Assembly (NCBI GenBank): GCA_964200185.2
Contig: CAXNAD020000022.1
Location: 1-45,669 of the forward strand
Direction: 5' to 3'
Source: Choristocarpus tenellus KU-1152
Taxonomy: Eukaryota > Protista > Phaeophyceae
DNA: 45,669 nucleotides
Both the position numbers and the translations under genes were made by a program. Shown piece by piece: positions 1,584 through 45,210 of the stretch; position 1 is the first letter of the stretch, and every line of letters begins with the position of its first letter. Under the pieces are notes generated by a model. It was not told the DNA's origin, did not search any database, and was given only the letters and a program-made list of their open reading frames with translations.

Positions 1584-4500
1584 CTGCAACTCAAAACAAG
1601 AATGGGCATGGAATTGCATTGAGAAGAAGAGGTGTGTTTGTAGGGAAAAAAGCAAAAAAGAAAGGGAGTTGCATCAAGATGGGGAGGCGTAACTTTTGAA
1701 AAACAGCACCAAAGGAAAAGAGTTGTGTCAAGATGAAGAGGACTTCTTATGGAAGAAACAACCCAAAAGAAAAGGAGCTGTATCAAGAGGGAGAGAGGTA
1801 TGACTGTAGAAGAAGAAATAGCATCGAAGGAGAAGGACACCAATCAAAGTCTCTACACTGGTTACATTGGAGTGATTGCAAAAACAAATGTTCTCATCAG
1901 ACAGAAAAACACCACAAAATGGGTGTGATATAGGGAAGTATACAATATGGAGTTGGTGGGATCACAGTATAATGGATCAACTTTATACCATCAGCAATAT
2001 ACCGCGCATCATCATACCGACCCACTGAACTCCCAACAAGTAGTCAATTACGATCTCCATCTTGTCAAGAAAATTGGGTTAGGGTTAGGGCTTCAAACAA
2101 ATTAGCACCATCTACCTCCCTGATATAATGTGGGTGTTGCGTTTCTGTAGGCATTACAATACTATCGGCATTCTCATCACTACGTAGTAGGATAAATAGT
2201 AGAAATTAAACCAAGATCATGACAAAATATGTCCCTATCTCATAAAATTTTCTTACTTTTTCCAAGAGTTGCCTAACCCTGACCCTAACCCTAAGTTTCA
2301 ATTGGGATCACTATTATCACTATCATTCCTTTCAAGTGTTATTATTATTATTATCACCCCTGCAGCAGCTATAACTGTATCACACATTTCTTGCTTCTAG
2401 ATGTATCACATTGGTTGTGTAGGAAGGTGTATCTTCCTTGCTTTCAAATGGTACTCCATTGTTGCCGTTGTAACCACTACTGGGATATCTTGTATGTTAT
2501 CTATTTCTTTCTCCTGGCAGCAAACCTACCTGCACTGCACACAATTGCCTTTACCATACTTGTTAGAATGAGCAGCAAGGTACTTTGTCGGTACAATAAA
2601 AACCTCATTGAAAAAGATATCGTCATCAAAAACGTTCAAGTGGTCAACTATATTCCTGCCCAGCATAGAGTAAAAGAAAGCAAGGGAGATGTGTGTTTTG
2701 CCCAATCTAGACTATTAAGGGTTCCTTTCTACTTCTTCATTGAAAAAAATATAAACATTCAGAAAAAGGGCATCGACGAGGTTCATTTATTTCTACTACA
2801 AAATTGAACATACTCACTAAACAGTCAAAATGCACTCCACACCTGTGGAATGTGTACTCCCAAAAACTGTTCCACCAGAAAGTCAAAAAGGGGACATTAA
2901 CACTCCCGAGGTTACATTATACCATAACAGAATAGGACTAGGGTTACAAGATATACAGACTATGCAAAGGAGTATGTTAGCAGTAAATCTGAATTCTCAG
3001 GTCAACACTGTTTGGGATGAGCAATATAGTGATCATCAAGTGAGTATTTAATTCACTGAATGATGGACTGTAAGCATTCCACAGTAATATTGTGGGATTT
3101 GCTCTGCTCTATATGAAGGTCAAAGAAGGGTTCATAGCCAAGAAAATGAAGGCAATAGATATCCTCTCTCTCACCTACTTCAACCCATACATATGCAATA
3201 ATATACCAACACAATAAATGAGAAAAAAATATTTGATAGAAACAGAACAATAAATATGTAAATATTTATGCATGTCAAATTTTTTTTGATAGTAACAGAA
3301 TAATAAATAAGAACTTATTTATGTTTAAACTGCATGCTCTACCGCATATCTTCCCCCAGAGCATTTCAGGTACATGCAGCTCCTCGCCCACACGCAATTT
3401 CTGTGCCATTCCATATATTTTTCAATTTCCGTTCTTGTGCACCCAACTAAATAAGTTGGTCTTTTACAGGATTTATTACATCACCCGCAAAGAAATGTTA
3501 GGGTCAGGATTAGGGATACGGCATACTTCAAAAGTAGTAACAAGTATTTACTTCAATCTAGAGTGTTGGACAGCTCTAAGCAGCTCTAAGAAGACAAGAG
3601 CTCCAGTGTATGTATCTTTCCGCTTGGAGACCCAAAGTATCTTGTAGGGTAGGACCGCGTCCATTTGGGGCCAAAATCCAATTTTGTGATTTGATGTAAT
3701 TTTGGCTATCGTGTTTGTTAGGAAGTTTCAGTATCCTTGTCCCCAACACACCTTTTCATAACATATAAATTTTACCTACTCAGAAACACTTTGGAGTAGG
3801 AAAATGTCATAAAAAAACCCATGGGAAGCCAAGCCCCAAATGGACAAACAGGGTGAAACTCGTATCCTCTCTTAGTAAGAGACTTTCACTCTGGAGTACC
3901 TTGCTCAGTTTATTTTGGTACAAACTGTAAAACGTTTCTCTCACAGCAAAAATACCATGTTCGTTGTGTAACAAGTCTTTTTATCTTTCCAAGAGCAAAA
4001 TGTTTCCTTTTATCTTTCGTAGGGTTCTTAGATTGATCCTTGACAAATGATAATCCTATTCTCGTACTCTTCTGAAGGAGAAACAAATGAATTGAGTGTG
4101 AATTCTTGATATACTATTGTTGTTAAGTTACTTTCAAGTAGTTGTGGGCAGACAACCTCCTCTTACCACCTATTTCCTGTTTGTCAGTCTCCAATTAGAA
4201 ACCTGACCCCCCACACATCATTTTTTTTTTAATGCTTTTTCTTTGGACCTTCACAAAAGTCTTCTCAACTCTTAACGTTTAAAAAAATTTAATACTACAC
4301 ATACACAAATGAAATCAGTAGTATCACATCAGATAAGCTGTCTACAAATATTATTTCTATTGCTATTTTTGTGCACTCACATCTATTGACGCAGATGTTC
4401 CACCATCCTCCTTAGTAGCACTAATGTTAACAACCTCTGAACTCTTGCTTTCGGCGGCTCTGACGACAGCTGGGCTCACCCATGAACCAACCATCACACG

Positions 4501-32200: not shown

Positions 32201-33957
32201 GCTCTCTTTTTCCTTCGGTCGAATAATAAATTCACTGGTAAGCATATTTGAATATTGCACTTATTTTGAACAGGAAAATAAATAACCATGAAAGGAATTA
32301 ATTGTGATGTTCTAGACTTTTCCCTGAACTTACAACAAGATTAGAGCTTCCCAAGTGAAATATGGATCGCGTGTCTTATTGATCTATCTCGGCACCCATG
32401 TCCCTTGACCGATTTCAATTGTGTTGATGATACATAAGAATTATACGACAGACGGTACATCACACTGAAAGACCAAAGCATGTCACTTGTATACATCTTT
32501 ATTAATCTGCCATGTTCTATGCTGCTGTGACGTAATTATTAACTGTCCTTGAAGATCTGTATCCCCAAATTGGACAAACAAGGTCTTACACATTCTCACG
32601 CTGCACATAAATTACCATAAGCAGCAAGAAAGTCAGATTTCAGAAACCATGTGTGTGATGCAGTATGTTTTCAAACGCCCCAAAGCCAGTCACCTTTCAA
32701 TAACATCTTGTCATCGCATTCCAAAAAGTCCGGAGTAACTTACCATTTATGAAGCACATGAATGTCACCATTCGAAAACATTTGTGGATCCCCTTTTGAA
32801 CAGTGGAAGAGCTTGAGATGCATTTGGAAATCGCTATCTTTTTATGTAAAGAACAGTTTAAATATCCCATTTTCGAAAAACCCTCTCATCAAATTGACGA
32901 CTTTTTGGAAAATTCCAAAAGATGGAAGGGGGCCTTGACACCTGTGTACAAGGAAAAAACTGATATATGTGTGCTCAGCATGGAGCGAACAACGTAAAAA
33001 TCCATTTCCCAACAACACCTTCCCTGCGGGAGGCTTTGAGGCCTATGAATCCTCTTTCGCTTTCCTCATTTCAAACCTTGGGAAGGCATTGTTGCTACTA
33101 TTCCCACAGAGCTTAACACAATACTATGTAAAATAAAAATGTGTGATATGAACCTATAGCGGTAACTCTACCAGCATCAAGATGAAGACGACAAAACCAT
33201 ACAATTCAGACGATGCGCCTGGTACTATTTCTTGCCCACACAGCAAAGCTACAATAAGTTAACCCCTAACAACATCTACCTCCCTCCTCTCTACACAACT
33301 GAGCCAGACACCAGACACAAGGTATGATACTTCTCATATTTCTTCTTTAGAGAGTGCATCAAAACCCAATCAACAAAATAAGCAAGAAAAACATGTGGCC
33401 CTAATCCTAGCCCTGAGCAGAAAACAAAATGAAAAAACCAACAAAATACCACAAGGGAATTTTTTTCTGTCCCAAGGAGGGTTTATCCACAAAAAAAAGA
33501 AACGTGTGTATGAAAGGGGAAGACAGTTCAATGTTCAACATGAAGATAACCTCCAGGTATGTGTCATATTTTATCTAATAAAAACTCATCACAAACAATA
33601 CCTCTAACAAAAAACAGCCCATAGTTGCGTCCAACAGCAATCAGCCGAAATGTGTTTGTGGTGTCTACCACAAGCCAGAAGAAAGCGTAAAGTTGACAAC
33701 AAGCCAGAAAATAAGTATTCAGCGTAAGTATTCAACACACCCTTCACACCACCGCAACTCTACTACCAAAACTGTAACCCCAACCCCACAAAAATCTACT
33801 GATTTAGCTAATATACAAAAGCCTAATATCTTCCATCCTCAACCCCCCCCAAAATATTAAGCAGAGAAGGTTTTGAAATTTCCCTTACCTCTCATACATC
33901 TTAGAAGACACATGTGACCACAAACACTCACTATGTGGCCATTTCTATGCATCCACC

Positions 33958-35714
33958 TTATTCCAAGTTGTATTCTTCATCACTGGAGCTAGAGCCAAAG
34001 CTGGTGCTGAAACTGTCCCACCTAAAACTCCTCATGTTACCACCACCATACATATTGGGCTGGGCAACACGTTTCTTCCTCCTTGACCCTTGGCATCTGT
34101 CACCAATGTCGCCAGCACGGCTATGTGCATAATCACCAGAGTTGACACCAGGACGAACACTACAAGCACGGCCACGAGCACGGCTACCAGAGACACCAGG
34201 AGGACGACTACGAGCACGCCCACCAGAGACATCATCAGGACGACCGGCTCTCTGATAGACCGAAACAGCCCCAACACTGACATCGAAACAGACATTACCA
34301 GGCGTAGACCATGAGAACACGTCTTCTCCTTTCTTCCCCGATTGTCCTACTCCAGTACTTTTGGAGCAACCATTACAGCTACCACGGCGGTCCACCCCCC
34401 TCCTCCCCAACCCTGCTTCATCCTTCAGAACATGTTGTGGGGATAGTCGGAGACGAAGCTCTGGTGCACCTGATAAGGCAGTAGCTTCAACACTGCCATC
34501 GCTATCGCTGGGGTCATTGACTGTGTAGCTTGTAATGTTTGGGTATTGGATAGTTGCAGGACACGATGAGACAACTTTCCCATTGTGTACTTGAGGGCAG
34601 AGGAGGGGAGAGAGCCGGGGGTGGCTCTGGAACTGGGTATAGCTTTTATCGTCATCGAAGCAATCACTACGACCACCTAACCCAGTGCTAAGCAAACAGG
34701 GAGCATCAATATCCTTGACTCCTTGAGAGATTGAGTTTGGACTAGAGGGTGGCTGCAACTCCAGCCCTTCCTGTTCCAATGGGGCAACATCATGGTCCAG
34801 TTCAGGCTTTCGTTTAAGGTTCAATCTCTCCTCACCATCTCTACTGGCCTCCTCACCCTCCTGCGGTGACGGCTCTGACCCTGCCCTGGATCCTCCTCCT
34901 GAAGCAGCCCCTTCCCCACAATTTACAACACCTTTGACCTTTACATCTCCTATTCCCGTCACAGAATTGCTCTCATCTTCCTCACTATTATGAGGCCCCT
35001 TCTTGCCACTTGCCCATCTTGCACCCAAAAACATTCCTTTCATCATCTGTACAATACCTCCACCACTACTGCCTCTATCATGGTCTCCAAAACCGCTGAA
35101 AACTGTTGAGGAGGCATTGCTATTCTTACCCCCTCCTTTCTTTTCCTCTCCATTGCTGCTGCTCATTCTTCCCAAACCGGAAGCATCAGCAACATGTACT
35201 GGTTCAACTGCACTGCCAGAACAAGAGCAAGAGGGATGCCTCTCACCAAATACAGTATCTGAGGACAAGGGGGATGTATCCTCTGGTCTCTTTTTCTCAT
35301 CACCAGATTGGCAGGAGCAATTGCTCTTGGTGTTCATCATTTGCATCCCCTTTATATCTACACCGCCAGTGATGGCCAACAATGGCTCTGCCTTGTCCTT
35401 TGAAGGATTTCTCTTCTCAAAACTGTTGCAGTCATCCAGGTTCTTGGTGCAAGGAGATGTTGCTGATGATGAAGATACGATTTTTTGTAGGAAAACCACG
35501 GCATGTTCCATACCAATTCCCGGGGGACCCTTGCTGCTAAATGCCCATTCCTTAATGCTGAGGGCTGGCACTGCATTCTTGTCAGCAAGAGCAACGTCCT
35601 TATCCTTGCTGTTGGTCAGTGCCAAGTCTTTGCCTTCTGTAGAGGTCAACTTCTCGCCCTGAATATTAGGTTCCTCTTTCTTCATAGTTGAACCCTTACT
35701 GCTCTGGCTGATGA
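33958..35714 (-). CDS. Bactofilin-domain gene exon D (about 585 aa low-complexity tail)
   Basis: Longest ORF in the window; a phase-1 acceptor TACAG|TC puts it in frame with exon C; ends at TAA 33960-33958. Confidence 0.75.
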
Positions 35715-38700
35715 CTGTACTAACATAGAAGAAGTGCACCAAGTATCCATGAAAAAAAGGAAATCAAAACACAAACACACACACACACACAGAGACAATA
35801 TTGAATCAAAAAGGTACGTCAAGAATTCAGAGGGAAAGAGCAGTAGAGAAAGCAAGGGAAGAAGATAAGTAGGTTAGCCATGCTTGAAAAGAAATTAAAT
35901 CCTGGGGGTATCTGGAGGTTAATCAAGGTGCAAAAATGCACCAATAGTTTTCGGGTGTGGTAGGAAACCTACATCTAACCTGATCTACATCAAATATTCA
36001 AAACAACTATTTTGGATGGAGTAGAAGAACAAACTAAGAAGAAGAGACAAAACACTGAAGAATTGTTTCACAACTCTGAACCCAAACCATCACCCTGTTC
36101 AATCTTTCTCCTTGGTCTACATCCTGTCCATAACCCTAACCCAATATACCTGAACACGTACCAACATTCTCTAAATTTTTTCTGGACCCCCCCAACATGC
36201 AATGACGGGAGGAATTCTGTTGGGATCCTTGACTATCTGCTCACAAGGTTTTACCTTTACTTGACTTATGCTCTCCTATCTACATCAAATTGCAAATATC
36301 AGAATGTATTGGTGAAACCAGCTTTGCTTGAACAACACACCACACTGATCAGAAAGAACATTTTCTAGTGCACAATATTGTTCTAAATAAGAAAAAAAAA
36401 TCCTTGGTGTAGCCTCATACATCCAGGCAGAAACACATCTATTTGCTTGCCAATGCTTGAAGAATCTCTTGAATCTGAAATTGGCAATCAATTTGCGCAG
36501 GTTCCAACAAACATGTGAGGGTATTCCTAGCGGATATTGAAGAAGATTCCCTCTGTAAGACTCGCGTTTGCCCAGCAAAAATACACCCATTGCCTGCCAC
36601 CTTTGCCAACGTTTTTGTGTCCTACCTATAACCCACATCTCATCCTATCCCATCCCTACACTAACATCCAACCCCTAGTATTCCCTACCAACAACTAATG
36701 CTCACCTGCCAGGGTATCCGTGGGCTTGCCATTGGCTGTTGGTGCTTTAGATACCTGGTCGTTCCTTCTGACTGAACCAGCACCAGCTGCATCATGACCA
36801 TTGCGATCAGGACCGACATCAGATCCCACATCCAAGCTGATTAAATGCCCCAGAATAAGGGCACCCTGTGAGAGGCATAATGTAACGGGAGAGTGCACAA
36901 GAAGTTGAATATCTTGAAATAGTTTCATGTTTTGATACATTTCCCAAAAACTAACCCTAACCCTAACCCAGAGAGGAGAAATGAAAAAAAAAATCATCTC
37001 AAAATTTAAAAAAAGGGCATTAGTACATATTGCCAGATGAGAAGAGGTCAAAATCTGCAACTACTACCATACCTCCCCCCTTCCCTTCTCTGTACACATT
37101 TGAGGAGATAAAAAACGAAACAAAGCAGTGTTCTCGTCAAAATTGTTCTGTTGCAGAAAGACAAACAAGTCACATACCTCTCCATCTCGCAATTGAAGGT
37201 GTGACAACAACTCTACTTACCTAGCTCAGAAAAATTATTTTGGGGCTTCCTATAGTTGCAAGTCGACAGAAGGTGCAAAATATAGGCAAACGTTGCTCAT
37301 AAAAGTGAACCTGTGGAAGACTAAAAAGGTTCCCCTCCCCTTCACATAATAGGGAATAACTGTTCTCATTGTAATGTCAACGTAAGGTGAACAATAGCTG
37401 GAAACGTGATCCCGGAAAGGGCTGTCGAAGTAGAAATAGAAGTCAGCTACCAACAGAATGACCTATGTACCTAAGTTCATCGCGGCCACTGATACAGCCC
37501 CAGAAGGCATAAACACATTAGCCCGAAATTGTGCCAGCTATCGATCTTGACAAGAAAATCAGGAGTGGCCGCCAACAGAATACAGGAGGTTGGACATTTC
37601 AGTGAAAATGTGCAATGCGTAATGCTGACCACATAAGATACACCTATTACATTGCCGTGGTTTCTCTCACATGAAAAACCACTTCACCCCCTTTGTATTA
37701 TATGCCACCAACATGGTGGTGATTTATTGTGAGTGACCATCAACTGTCGAATGGAAACCATTTACAACAACTCATCAAGTATCTCAATACATTGCAGCTG
37801 ATCGCAACCCCTCATTTGATGAAAAAGTATCTCAATAGAAATTCTCATTTGATGAAATTCGCCGAGAGGAAGTTGTGGGAAGGTGGTGATTGGATTCCCT
37901 GTTGAAAAAACGGGCCTGCTAGGAGCTTTCAAAGGCTGCAATCTGCCAAGTACACCTGCAGTGCAGAGTAGGACAAAATGAATGTGACTATTGTGTCCCT
38001 GCTCCTCCCTACTATGTCCCGGCCAACCAAAAGACTGCTCAATCTACAGAATTTTTTTGTAGTTCACTTACGCATACGTCTGGGGTTTACATTGGCATAG
38101 AGAGTGTAAATACCGTTAAAAACCATATCACAATGTCATGATTTACAAACGTACTTTGTTCTAGAACTGTTGTTGTCAGATACCAACCATAGGAGTATGT
38201 TGCATTTTATTAACATCGTTAGGAGTGCAAAAGAATGAAGAATGAACTGACCACTTCTGGATTATTTGCGCCTAGAATTTACACATCATTTTCTTGTTAG
38301 AATTTACACATCATTTTCTTGTTAGCCTGAAAAAATTGGAAGTGCACCTCCTTGTCCTATATATATATATATATATATAACCATCACTCAAACCATGATG
38401 TTAAATATCGAGGTCAATACAATTCTGAAGGTACCTCTTCCATTCTAGTCAGTCCGTGCACTGTTCCCGTTAGGGTTGAGGATAGGAAGGGAATTGAAAG
38501 CTAAAGTTTGTACTCACACAGCAACAATTACTAAAAGGAATTCCTGTGTCGGGGTTGGGAGTGCAGGGGCGGGAGAGGGATAAAAACCCTTAGTTTAATA
38601 GTAATGTACAAGATGTTGCAGTTGCACTTAAAAAAAGAAGAAAGAAATTTCGGTCAATGTATTACTGTGTATGTACATGGAGGTTGACTTTTTGCACCCA

Positions 38701-39788
38701 CCTTTTCTGTCTCCAGCACGCGGTAGGAGATATCACCCCGAATCTTGCCTCCAGATCCAATATGAGCCAGATGGTGCGCGACTAGATTTGCATTCATCTC
38801 TCCATGGACAACTGCGCTGCCACAATCCACAGCACCGATTACAGTGCCACCTGTTATTCTCCAGTGCAAGCCCACAAAACGCAGGAGTTGTAAGAGAATT
38901 GTGTATTTGTAGGGTTGGGGCTACGGGATCATCCTCCAAAATACAAAAGCGAAGATATTGAATTAATTCATTCATGTTACAGTGTGATTGGGTAGTAAAA
39001 CACACTTCGTTGTAGATATTATATTGTTACTGATGTGGTACAACTATCTGTAGGGAGGCGGTGTATTTGTCTTATTGTTTCTGCTGGACATCATCGATAG
39101 CTGCACTACACTAATACGATATTAGTGCGGAGGTTGTCAGGAGGCATAGCCCAGCTGATAGAGGATCACAGCACAAACCTTGTTCTACTACGATCCGCGC
39201 CACGGATAAGATCCCTTTCAATTCGCCCCCAACCACCACTGTTGCGTTCTGGTCTTCCACGTTAACTGACATCGAACATCCCTTGCCCACACTTAGCACC
39301 CGATTTGTTTCGAGTTCCTGTCGCCTCTTGAGCCAGGCGGCTGGACTCGTAGCAAACTTTTTGATGGGTACGGAGTCGTTGCCAGATGTGACGGATGCAG
39401 CCGTAGTTGTAGAAAAAAAAGCAGAGGTGGTGGCAATAGAGGAATTGGAGCTGGTGACCTCAGATCGGAACCGTGTTGAAGTGAAAGTGGCCGTTGGGAC
39501 TGGTGCAAGAGTTGCGGTACGGGGTGCGTGGGCAGATTCTCGAGAAAAAGAATTCGAGGAGGTTGATCTTAGATATCCTGACAAGATTGGAGAGCTGTCA
39601 GAAGAACTATTCGTCTCATGTGGCCCCTGCTGAAGACCAATTCGGGGTCTATCCCACAACTCCTCGTCCGACTCAGACTCTAGTGGTCCACCAGGCAAGC
39701 GGCGACTGGTGGAGGAAGGGCCTCCATAGCGCGACTCCCTAGCGTCGATGTCAAAGTCTATGCACCGCTCGTACTGCTGGGTGGGCAT
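33958..39788 (-). CDS. Bactofilin-domain (polymer-forming cytoskeletal, DUF583) protein, 4 exons, about 891 aa, with long disordered N- and C-terminal regions
   Basis: Exons 39788-39179, 38850-38702, 36865-36706 and 35714-33958 join with GT-AG sites in phases 1, 0, 1 (2676 nt including stop). The spliced domain RVLSVGKGCSMSVNVEDQNATVVVGGELKGILSVARIVVEQG-GTVIGAVDCGSAVVHGEMNANLVAHHLAHIGSGGKIRGDISYRVLETEK-GALILGHLISL has the bactofilin beta-helix pattern. The frame stays open upstream to a CAG acceptor near 39899, so the start may lie in an earlier exon. Confidence 0.85.
36706..36865 (-). CDS. Bactofilin-domain gene exon C (last rung GALILGHL plus linker)
   Basis: CACAG acceptor, G|GTGAG donor, phase 0-1. 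Confidence 0.85.
38702..38850 (-). CDS. Bactofilin-domain gene exon B (core beta-helix)
   Basis: CAG acceptor, AAG|GTGGGT donor, phase 1-0; GTVIGAV..AVVHGEMNANL..IGSGGKIRGDISY. Confidence 0.9.
39179..39788 (-). CDS. Bactofilin-domain gene exon A (Ser/Thr-rich region plus first beta-helix rungs)
   Basis: ORF 39111-39788; CAAG|GTTTG donor in phase 1; CpG-rich. Confidence 0.85.
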
Positions 39789-41059
39789 GTGGGGAGGGGA
39801 AACATCACTGTTGCCCCAGGATGGCCTCTGCCTGGATCTGAGTTGAGGAACGGGGTGGAGCGAAACGTCAAATCGGGAAGGGCGAAAATGCGTTACTTCT
39901 GTTTATATGTAAATCGCTAACGACGATAACACGGTTCACCTCGGTCAGCATTGCCACTAACCTACAGGAGGACTAGTTGACAAGGGGAGAGAGTAGTACT
40001 AATTGCTAAATCGATAGGATGTGCCACACATTGTAACACATGTACAGCACCAGGAGCAAATCTTCAAAACCAGTACATCATCAAATTCGATGGATAACAC
40101 TCTACCTGGACTTGTTGCCACCCAATCCAGACCCGAAGATGTCAACGGCAGGTTGCTTTGTCTTGAGAGAGCTCCCCCTTCGCTTTATCATTTTGACTGC
40201 TGTAACTTCTTGATCATGCTTTGAGGGCAAGAGGTGAGCGGTATTGGGTTCATTATAGAAATCAAGTTGCATGTTGGGTAAGTATGCTCTTGGTGTCTTT
40301 GTACGACATCATCCCAAACAGAACAACTTCGGTTATGGAATGTAGAATACCTACGAAGCTCAACGATTTATTGGATAGTGTTTTCAAGATGCGTAAGGAC
40401 ACTCTGGACCATCTGTCAATTTGTGCTCATTCTTCTTCATCGAACGGTTCTCATATTCTTATTGAAGTAGAAATTGGTTGATCCAAAATATCAAAATATA
40501 ACAATATCTTCTACTTCCAACAAAAGATTTATAGTGGATAGGAAGTAGTGTCTTAGTGACAAAGAATTTCCGATCTCCATTGTGTCACTGTTGGGGACTG
40601 TTCAAAATTGACAAATTGTTAGATGATAAGTTCAATATGTTATGATGTCTTCAAGATATGGTAAGCTAGAAGTACAATGATGGTTTTAGTACAGTATTAT
40701 CATTACATGTCGATGATGATCGTTTTCATTACTAACTCAACTATTATTTTGGGACAATCTTTAGATAAAAAGTAACTTCAGTTTTTCCCTCACACATCTA
40801 CCATATCTGAGAGAACATTATTACTATAATAGGTTATATATCGGCAGTATCTTACACAGCAGTTTTGCCGCAAGATAACATTGTTCCAGTTTCCGATTTT
40901 TGTACAACAATAAACAATAAGGTCCAAGGTTGGATGTCGGTCTATCCGATACTTTGCACAAACCCTAGTGTCTATGCCAAAAGATAAATAGTAAGTTTAG
41001 AAGTATTGAATGAGAAAAACACAATCAAGGTTGGATTCCTCTAGAACTGGTGATATTGG

Positions 41060-43162: not shown

Positions 43163-45210
43163 ATGTCAGTGATGATTGATGGATGGCTGGCGGGAAATTA
43201 ATCATTCAGTGTATGTGTGACGGACAGGTCTTTTAGGAACTGATCTCAGTACAAGTACATATCCGCGCGCATACACAAGTGCATTGCGCGCACATTTCTT
43301 TGTCATTGGTGAGGTTCCCACCAACATCAAACACAGAGAACTCTTGAGAATTCTCAGACTTACTACCAGTGACGATCACCAAGATGTTACGCCATCTGGT
43401 GGATCCGGGATTCTCTTAAAACTTCTCCTAAGATTTGATGGCTGAGAGAGCTTTGGGTTTGCTGGGTAGCACCCCACCATGACACAATTGGCAATTCTGA
43501 ACACTCCCCACGACTGATTGAACCCTGCCTCACACAGTGGTACTCACGCCAACAGTCAAAAAGGGATGGATACACCATATGAAGAAGTAACCAAGGACAA
43601 GAAGAAACATGATAAACCAGACAAGGGTAAAACCAAAACCACTGGCCCGCCTGAGACAGCACCTGGTCCAAGCAAGGTACCTGGGCCCAATACCGATATT
43701 CCATCAACCAATTCGACTGATGGCGTCCTAGAAGGCTCGCTTGAGCAAGACGGGATGGCGGGGGAGCAACCCAGGGAACGCCCCCCCTGCAGTACGGTCA
43801 GCCCATCTATTAATCGATTTGCAGTACTGGGAGAAAGCTGTGAGCCCGAAGACCAACCTCCACTGACAAATCTGTGCGATGATTATATGGAGAGGATCCT
43901 GCTGGACTTAAGGGCGCTTTGGTGGTTTCAGCGCTTCAATCAAGCATCAGCAACGCTGAAGGCGAATATAAACCAGATCAGTACAGGTGCAACGCAGTCA
44001 ACCAATCGACCGTACATCCTTAACACCCTATTGGCTAAGGATTTAACGTCGATCAAATTCTTTGGATCAGACAAAGATGGTAGACAGTGTGGTCGCAGAT
44101 TCTGACTTAATTTCGGTTTTTTCCGAATATCGATCCCGGATTTGTTCATTGGCAATGGTAATAAAAGAAGCGGCACCAGCTTGTGAACACGACATCTATG
44201 AACAATCCCTAGATGACTTGTGCTTACAGAATTTCGTACACATGCATCTGTCGGGGAATTCCCTGGCACAACGCCACGCCAGAAGTTTTTTGCCACCCCC
44301 CGTTTTGCATCCTGGAACCAGTTGATAGAAGAGTTTACCCGCCAATTTGCATCGCAGTTTCCCTTGGATGACTATTTTCACACTGCCATCCACCTGCACA
44401 TGCCAGAGTGGGAAGCGCACGAGCGTTTGGCCGCAGAGTGGTGCAGACTGTAGATAATTTTGTCAGACTCATTCCTGTCAATGAGGAAGGCCAACCAGAG
44501 TTATCCGATTGCCTAGTCATGTGTGTATTCAACCTCGGAGCCCAACCCTCAATTGTGTGGGCCATTCGATCGTTGCCGACCCCGCCAAAAAAGTTTGGTG
44601 AACTTGTAGATGCAGCTGCTTTAGCGAATGCTTCCAGGTCGGGTCTTGAGTTTAGTGGCCGCTCATATCGCAACGTCACAGTTTCAACTTTAGACGCAGA
44701 AAGTTTACTTTCTTTACCTGTCACCGAACTGCGTTTTTTGGACTTGGAGCCACTACAGAAGTTGGCTAAAGAACTACAAGCAGAGAACAAGATGTGGTGT
44801 GTGAAGAAGCGAAGTAACATTACTCCTGCTCGCAACCAAGCACCCCCACAAGGGAAACACGAGGAAAAGCGCGTGTGCACTGATTCAAAACACAGTTTTG
44901 TGAACTTCCGTGCTGTGGTGCTAGATCTAGAAGGGGTCACAATACAGAGCATTGTTTTTTCAACCCGAATGGCGAGAATTATAAACCTGATTATCGTCCT
45001 CGTGCGTTTGACAACCTCAACCCCAAGGCCCCCAACGAAATGATGCAACAATTTGTTGCAGCCCTTACTGCTTCGTTGTCAACTCAAGGTTCGATGGAAG
45101 AATCGACTTCCCAAGATCAGACTAGTCAGGGTACTTTTGAGGGAGATGGGAAAGTCAACAAGCGTGTATAGGGGTGCCCAGTGTTCGTAGATAGTGCTGC
45201 TGATACACTA
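43163..45210 (+). mobile_element. Decayed LTR retrotransposon (Ty3/gypsy-like): candidate 5' LTR end and PBS, frameshifted gag, protease remnant
   Basis: ..TGTCA(43305) followed by TGGTGAGGTTCCCACC (PBS-like). Overlapping broken ORFs 43518-45043 include gag-capsid-like FASWNQLIEEFTRQF and a degenerate knuckle (RVCTDSKHSFVN). CPVFVDSAAD near 45175-45205 resembles the retropepsin D(S/T)G site. The LTR start is uncertain and no RT or integrase is seen. Confidence 0.7.

Follow-up and report, generated by a model that had tools for sequence, protein, structure and literature searches.

Positions 1 to 45,669 of contig CAXNAD020000022.1, analyzed here as the window (45,669 nucleotides, nt), carry on the minus strand what is likely a protein-coding gene of a eukaryotic nuclear genome, very probably that of the brown alga Choristocarpus tenellus. 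The gene belongs to an intron-bearing bactofilin family of about 16 members, and in five exons it would encode a six-rung beta-helix held between two disordered arms. The combined profile and modeling comparisons described below support a bactofilin domain encoded across exons 1 to 3. A preliminary description of this stretch, made from the letters alone, had put forward a bactofilin domain split across three exons. Between 39837 and 36706 of the minus strand (all coordinates are those of the window) there are indeed three open pieces whose translations are identical to the peptides quoted there, and the exons at 39179-39837, 38702-38850 and 36706-36865 join in phase via canonical GT-AG introns to spell about 103 amino acids (aa) with six beta-helix rungs.

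Identity of the bactofilin domain

Pfam scans, profile alignments and folding were all carried out exon by exon, one piece at a time. The central piece, exon 2 (49 aa), gave the strongest result: scanned alone it matched only the Bactofilin family (PF04519) in Pfam, with 32.4 bits against a curated cut-off of 27.9 bits (E 1.2e-7, over positions 41-88 of the 98-position profile). When all 164 Mb of the genome were searched in six frames, the exon still reached E 1.6e-5 for PF04519, so the match is more than chance. In an hhalign comparison with five aligned bacterial-type bactofilins, exon 2 fell on residues 53-96 of the member P0002 (89% probability, E 2e-6); it also aligned, weakly, to residues 60-100 of the Thermus bactofilin TtBac (E 0.62). 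When exon 2 was compared with 1.84 billion representative proteins a single match was returned, a bacterial-type bactofilin of 132 aa (35 bits), and 29 of its 30 nearest Atlas clusters, which are language-model look-alikes, carry the same Bactofilin Pfam set as the top hit.

The two flanking pieces align, less clearly, on either side of this center. The end of exon 1, aligned together with its paralogue against the first rungs by hhalign, was recovered in the expected register (E 2.9e-4, probability 40%), and it scored 10.5 bits against a hidden Markov model (HMM) of the first rungs, a value reached by 3 of 3000 shuffles. Residues 2-21 of exon 3 aligned to P0002 99-118, directly after the point at which exon 2 ends (96-97), a match that is weak when taken alone (E 0.067). 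Each scored separately, the three pieces tile the six-rung domain without gap or overlap. Two further hhalign comparisons of the exon 1 piece were uninformative, in that the alignment to whole bacterial bactofilins slipped by one rung and was set aside, and no match was obtained against P0002 alone.

Structure prediction is consistent with this assignment for the central piece. The AlphaFold model of exon 2 had a predicted local distance difference test (pLDDT) score of 91.8, and VIA-align superposed 48 of its 49 residues on the Thermus bactofilin structure 6ria with Z 6.1 and a root-mean-square deviation (rmsd) of 1.1 Å, whereas other solenoids reached Z 3.6 or less at 2.4-7.8 Å, with left-handed helices above 7 Å. 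A right-handed triangular beta-helix is thus modeled for the central 49 aa only. The exon 1 piece (AF2 pLDDT 87.7) had as its best structural match the Caulobacter crescentus bactofilin BacA (2n3d), which was weak at Z 2.6.

We considered whether the domain could instead reflect bacterial contamination, or another beta-solenoid (a left-handed hexapeptide, pentapeptide-repeat or CARP fold) mistaken for a bactofilin, and regard this as extremely improbable. Foldseek did return no significant match for the 49-aa exon 2 model and listed other solenoids beside 6ria, so that bactofilin is separated from those folds by VIA-align and not by Foldseek. Against this stand the wide gap in the VIA-align scores, the Bactofilin family as the only Pfam match, a contig composition that matches that of the genome, and the interruption of the domain by introns of 328 and 1836 nt, both of which contain stops. 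Taken together, the exon 2 Pfam score above cut-off, the profile alignments and the fold overlay uphold the bactofilin assignment.

Exons, introns and transcript-like coverage

Exon 1 (39179-39837) encodes an N-terminal arm of low complexity that is rich in Ser and Thr, and its end, at 39179-39302, encodes the N-terminal two and a half rungs of the bactofilin helix (RVLSVGKG...IVVEQ). Intron 1 (38851-39178, 328 nt, GT..AG) interrupts a Gly codon in phase 1, with the exon 1 border reading ...GAACAAG/GTTTGT at 39179 (the slash marks the splice site) and ...AACAG/ preceding exon 2 at 38850. Exon 2 (38702-38850) contributes the central rungs in 49 whole codons and is followed by the phase 0 intron 2 (36866-38701, 1836 nt, GT..AG), whose borders are ...GAAAAG/GTGGGT at 38702 and ...CACAG/ before exon 3 at 36865. 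Exon 3 (36706-36865) then supplies the last rung, GALILGHL (36842-36865), and the beginning of the C-terminal arm. The exons have a guanine-cytosine content of 47-54% and the introns of 40-45%.

Three sequencing runs cover the stretch. In run X1, which may represent the source DNA, one contig spans all of it; X2 resembles DNA, and X3 looks RNA-like. Contigs of X3 cover only 33900-35699 and 39286-39840, with depth zero in the introns, and one contig runs from 39840 directly to 40109, the 3 shared bases resolving to a GT..AG intron at 40105-39838. This intron 0 (39838-40105, 268 nt) is the sole intron whose joined form is seen in a run, and it connects exon 1 to an upstream exon 0 with a coding part at 40106-40272 that begins with ATG at 40272; the exon itself extends to at least about 40327. 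The reading frame is open from ATG 40272 to ATG 39788 and is bounded upstream by an in-frame stop 13 codons before 40272. The X3 coverage of exons 0, 1 and 4 is expression-like.

At the other end of the gene, splice-site pairing suggests that a fourth intron most likely leads from exon 3 to a tail of 584 aa. The donor CAG/GTGAGC at 36706 and the acceptor TACAG/ at 35714 are the sole pairing that enters the exon 4 open reading frame (ORF) in frame, and they would delimit a phase 1 intron 3 (35715-36705, 991 nt, GT..AG). An alternative exon 3 donor at 36755/36754 (CAG/GTATCT) was rejected because it gives no entry into that frame. Exon 4 (33958-35714) encodes a Ser/Gly/Asp/Lys-rich sequence with the basic motifs LKRKPE and RRKKR and ends with the stop TAA at 33958-33960; it lies within a 594-aa open frame that begins just 30 nt before the acceptor, and X3 contigs over it end 15 nt short of that site. 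Collectively, the gene most likely has five exons comprising 2892 nt and 963 aa, in which a Ser/Thr-rich N-terminal arm of about 234 aa precedes the helix at approximately residues 235-337 and a Ser/Gly/Asp/Lys-rich C-terminal arm of about 626 aa follows it. Neither the N-terminal arm nor the exon 4 tail matched a Pfam family. The three exons of the preliminary description therefore stand, but the gene is larger than that version, given the spliced exon upstream and the likely fourth intron downstream.

The region could alternatively hold two genes, a bactofilin of about 390 aa that reads through the exon 3 donor to TAG 36695-36697 and a separate Ser/Gly-rich gene starting from an ATG at about 35685, which we judge unlikely. 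This division would account for the lack of any X3 read joining 36706/35714 and for the long ORF having its own ATG 20 codons in, and it fits a tail that has no homologue and was not found beside the closest paralogue. The five-exon gene, on the other hand, is favored by canonical splice sites that form the sole combination entering the 584-codon frame, by the opening of that frame so close to the acceptor, by the location of both parts on the same strand, and by an X3 depth that is alike on exons 1 and 4 (6-8).

Repeats occur in both of the longer introns. Intron 2 contains a (TA)n tract and a 25-nt sequence duplicated in direct tandem, at 38348-38390 and 38290-38335, intron 3 contains a (GT)n run at 35775-35803, and TTAGGG-like, telomere-type repeats lie at 36946-36975 (intron 2) and about 36120-36146 (intron 3). 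Since many run contigs break at the TTAGGG-like repeats or pass there into unrelated sequence, and depth spikes, this element appears to be a dispersed genome repeat.

An intron-bearing family of paralogues

The six-frame genome search yielded 20 exon-level PF04519 matches. Those on C24137 and C4873 proved to be low-complexity tandem repeats and were discarded as bactofilins, and the remaining matches represent about 16 bactofilin genes on 15 contigs, with each open frame covering no more than part of the profile, which is what split genes should show. Bactofilin loci lie on C1994, C10596, C13710, C6936, C4443, C3983, C3817, C21812, C2682, C24426, C2162 (two genes), C1497, C5336 and C15639. 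At least two sequence types can be distinguished within the family, one with a GELxFxRLLRVDGxFxG start and one with IVGKGxTVxG, and all are intron-split. The assignment of the genome to C. tenellus is supported by gene placement: Pfam searches located sulfatase exons on C1843, C5187 and C508 and a PKS exon on C6310, while the Phaeoexplorer supplement has the sulfatases of this alga on contig1851, contig5214 and contig507 and its PKS1 on contig6344. These small offsets increase with contig number, as would fit one and the same assembly from which a few contigs were removed.

The closest paralogue, on C2682, is 47% identical to exon 1 over its final 55 aa and 37% identical to exon 2. Its donor lies at VVEP-G/, its acceptor before GRLLG and its next donor after MEMQK/, which places both domain introns at identical codons and phases in the two genes. 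At least six loci have the phase 1 intron in a Gly codon just before the G-x-h-x-G turn; for C1994, both C2162 genes and C5336 this rests on manual inspection of the flanking sequence. In C15639 an acceptor occupies the equivalent position, apparently in a different phase. Because diverged copies share intron positions, the family appears to have expanded within the nuclear genome after intron gain, and the shared positions exclude contamination more firmly than introns alone would. The earlier proposal of a eukaryotic nuclear gene, as opposed to a contaminant, is consequently strengthened by two spliceosomal-type introns, by their shared positions in C2682 and by about 16 intron-bearing members.

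The likeness to the C2682 gene covers the domain, its two intron positions and an N-terminal arm that is Ser/Thr/Pro-rich in the paralogue. Identity is only 37-47%, no equivalent of exon 3 was found within the 2.3 kb available, and no exon 4-like tail was found on C2682. A motif (S/T)P..W.(K/R)R lies just ahead of the first rung in both genes (window 39276-39332 and 3281-3331 of the C2682 locus, minus strand); no other stretch of the N-terminal arm is conserved, and the motif could serve as a cap or for binding. A second paralogue, on C13710, keeps an MFSRK N-terminus, which the present gene lacks.

Protein searches beyond this genome were largely silent. Among 5.8 billion proteins the only match to the exon 4 tail was the gene call of the window itself, a search with the end of exon 1 likewise returned only that gene call, and no orthologue was found, although length filters could hide long orthologues. 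This raised the question of an expressed pseudogene or decaying family copy, a reading also compatible with the zero X3 depth over exons 2 and 3. We find it very unlikely, as all five exons are open, the splice sites are all canonical, and 37-47% identity to the C2682 gene is maintained without stops or frameshifts, indicating long purifying selection.

A neighboring ORC3 gene, which had been cited in the preliminary description as a further argument for a nuclear origin, was not borne out. PF07034 (ORC3_N) had no match in the genome, PF18137 (ORC_WH_C) gave weak matches on C4209 and C11003 only, and ten large ORFs of the window matched no Pfam family; nothing in the window was identifiable as ORC3. 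Two of the weak PF18137 matches fall in one 410-aa open frame at C4209:6081-6980 on the minus strand (34.9 bits together), and an ORC3-like gene, if the genome has one, may be located on C4209 rather than in the window. Elsewhere in the window, at 43518-45051, both strands carry ORFs (195-238 aa) that overlap one another and have no Pfam family.

Subunit interface, arms and known bactofilins

In solved structures, bactofilin cores assemble end to end into non-polar filaments independently of nucleotides. BacA (2N3D) has the same six-rung architecture, and its final rung, GAFFQG, corresponds to GALILG in exon 3; TtBac (6RIA, 6RIB) is the protein on which the exon 2 model overlays at 1.1 Å over 48 residues. 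The interface residues BacA F130 and TtBac Phe105 both align with an Ile at 36854-36856, a hydrophobic though non-aromatic residue. At the BacA F130 position the nearest bacterial relatives likewise have Leu or Ile. Since exon 3 supplies the Ile of GALILG, this exon must be spliced in for an F130-type interface to exist.

TtBac has 123 aa, short tails, an N-terminal membrane-binding motif and an uninterrupted bacterial gene. BacA associates with the membrane, where it recruits a synthase of the cell wall, a context without counterpart in the present gene. The bacterial bactofilins compared span about 120-200 aa, while here a short core sits between about 234 and about 626 disordered residues. 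The N-terminus, MQLDFYNEPN (or MPTQQYERC), contains neither a bacterial-style membrane peptide nor a signal peptide; the helix is preceded instead by the low-complexity arm.

Based on these comparisons we propose that the protein would act through its bactofilin core as a filament or co-filament subunit, with the exon 3 Ile contributing to one subunit interface and the two long arms projecting from the filament as flexible docking surfaces. Due to the lack of a membrane peptide and a signal peptide, it would act in the cytosol or nucleus, or would reach membranes only by co-assembly with MFSRK paralogues. We place the odds that the protein really polymerizes at roughly even. The main competing possibility, which we consider somewhat unlikely, is that the helix is a non-polymerizing bactofilin-like module serving as a rigid spacer or adaptor in a mostly disordered protein. 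Replacement of the interface Phe by Ile, the missing membrane-targeting peptide and arms of 234 and 626 aa that could hinder lateral packing would all fit such a role, as would the fact that the oomycete protein PiBac is the sole eukaryotic candidate shown to polymerize. Conversely, the interface position is still hydrophobic in a manner shared with the nearest bacterial relatives, the helix has its full six rungs, and the model of exon 2 follows TtBac closely, which together argue for the filament or co-filament subunit.

Bactofilin clusters from stramenopiles and from ascomycetes were reported in 2019, with the putative Ectocarpus protein D7G0L1 among those named (Deng et al., 10.1101/617639). 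The preliminary description mentioned oomycete homologues, and the stramenopile bactofilins listed in 2019 already extended beyond oomycetes. The present gene does not define a new category, as a brown-alga bactofilin was already among those reported. Eukaryotic bactofilin genes having been known since then, what is added here is the gene itself, its intron structure, its size and the expansion of its family. PiBac (Phytophthora infestans PITG_07992, D0N980) forms filaments in vitro, whereas expression of D7G0L1 was attempted and failed (10.1101/617639). Both resemble the present gene in carrying PF04519 in a stramenopile nuclear genome, where it is thought to have been acquired from bacteria; the present gene differs from them in its domain introns, its length of about 963 aa, its two long disordered arms and its family of about 16 members. 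The word "intron" does not occur in the 2019 paper, and neither intron structure nor family size is mentioned there or in the other literature searched. "Bactofilin" is absent from the Phaeoexplorer paper and supplements searched, and our literature search found no paper on brown-alga bactofilins. Functional work on bactofilins was still confined to bacteria as of a 2024 paper (PMC11459167).

Several observations weigh against the interpretation as a whole. Scanned alone, neither the end of exon 1 nor the first part of exon 3 gave a Pfam match, and profile and fold support for those two pieces is only moderate. The alignments supplied to AF2 included bacterial bactofilins, which biases the models toward that fold. 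With respect to expression, no X3 contig reaches exons 2 and 3, leaving junctions 39179/38850 and 38702/36865, like the exon 3 to exon 4 join, seen in no read, and the record does not state what kind of run X3 is. The unsuccessful ortholog search belongs here as well. Finally, as the Ectocarpus protein could not be expressed, filaments are yet to be demonstrated for any brown-alga bactofilin, and polymerization, localization and the roles of the arms stand here as proposals.

A more far-reaching scenario, which we regard as speculative and improbable, is that in brown algae a bacterial filament protein has been turned into a eukaryotic multi-paralogue cytoskeleton, in which about 16 genes would descend from one intron-bearing ancestor and giant-armed subunits would co-assemble with membrane-anchored paralogues and recruit factors. 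One possible site of such a cytoskeleton is the nucleus, in view of the motifs RRKKR and LKRKPE; another is flagellated reproductive cells, at which the link between PiBac expression and sporulation hints. Among the widespread prokaryotic cytoskeletal polymers bactofilins are understood least, and the gene described here provides a well-delimited eukaryotic member. Its domain introns, shared among paralogues, show that such genes have long resided and diversified in a nuclear genome. The gene may thus serve as a useful test case for how a eukaryote rebuilds a horizontally acquired filament former.

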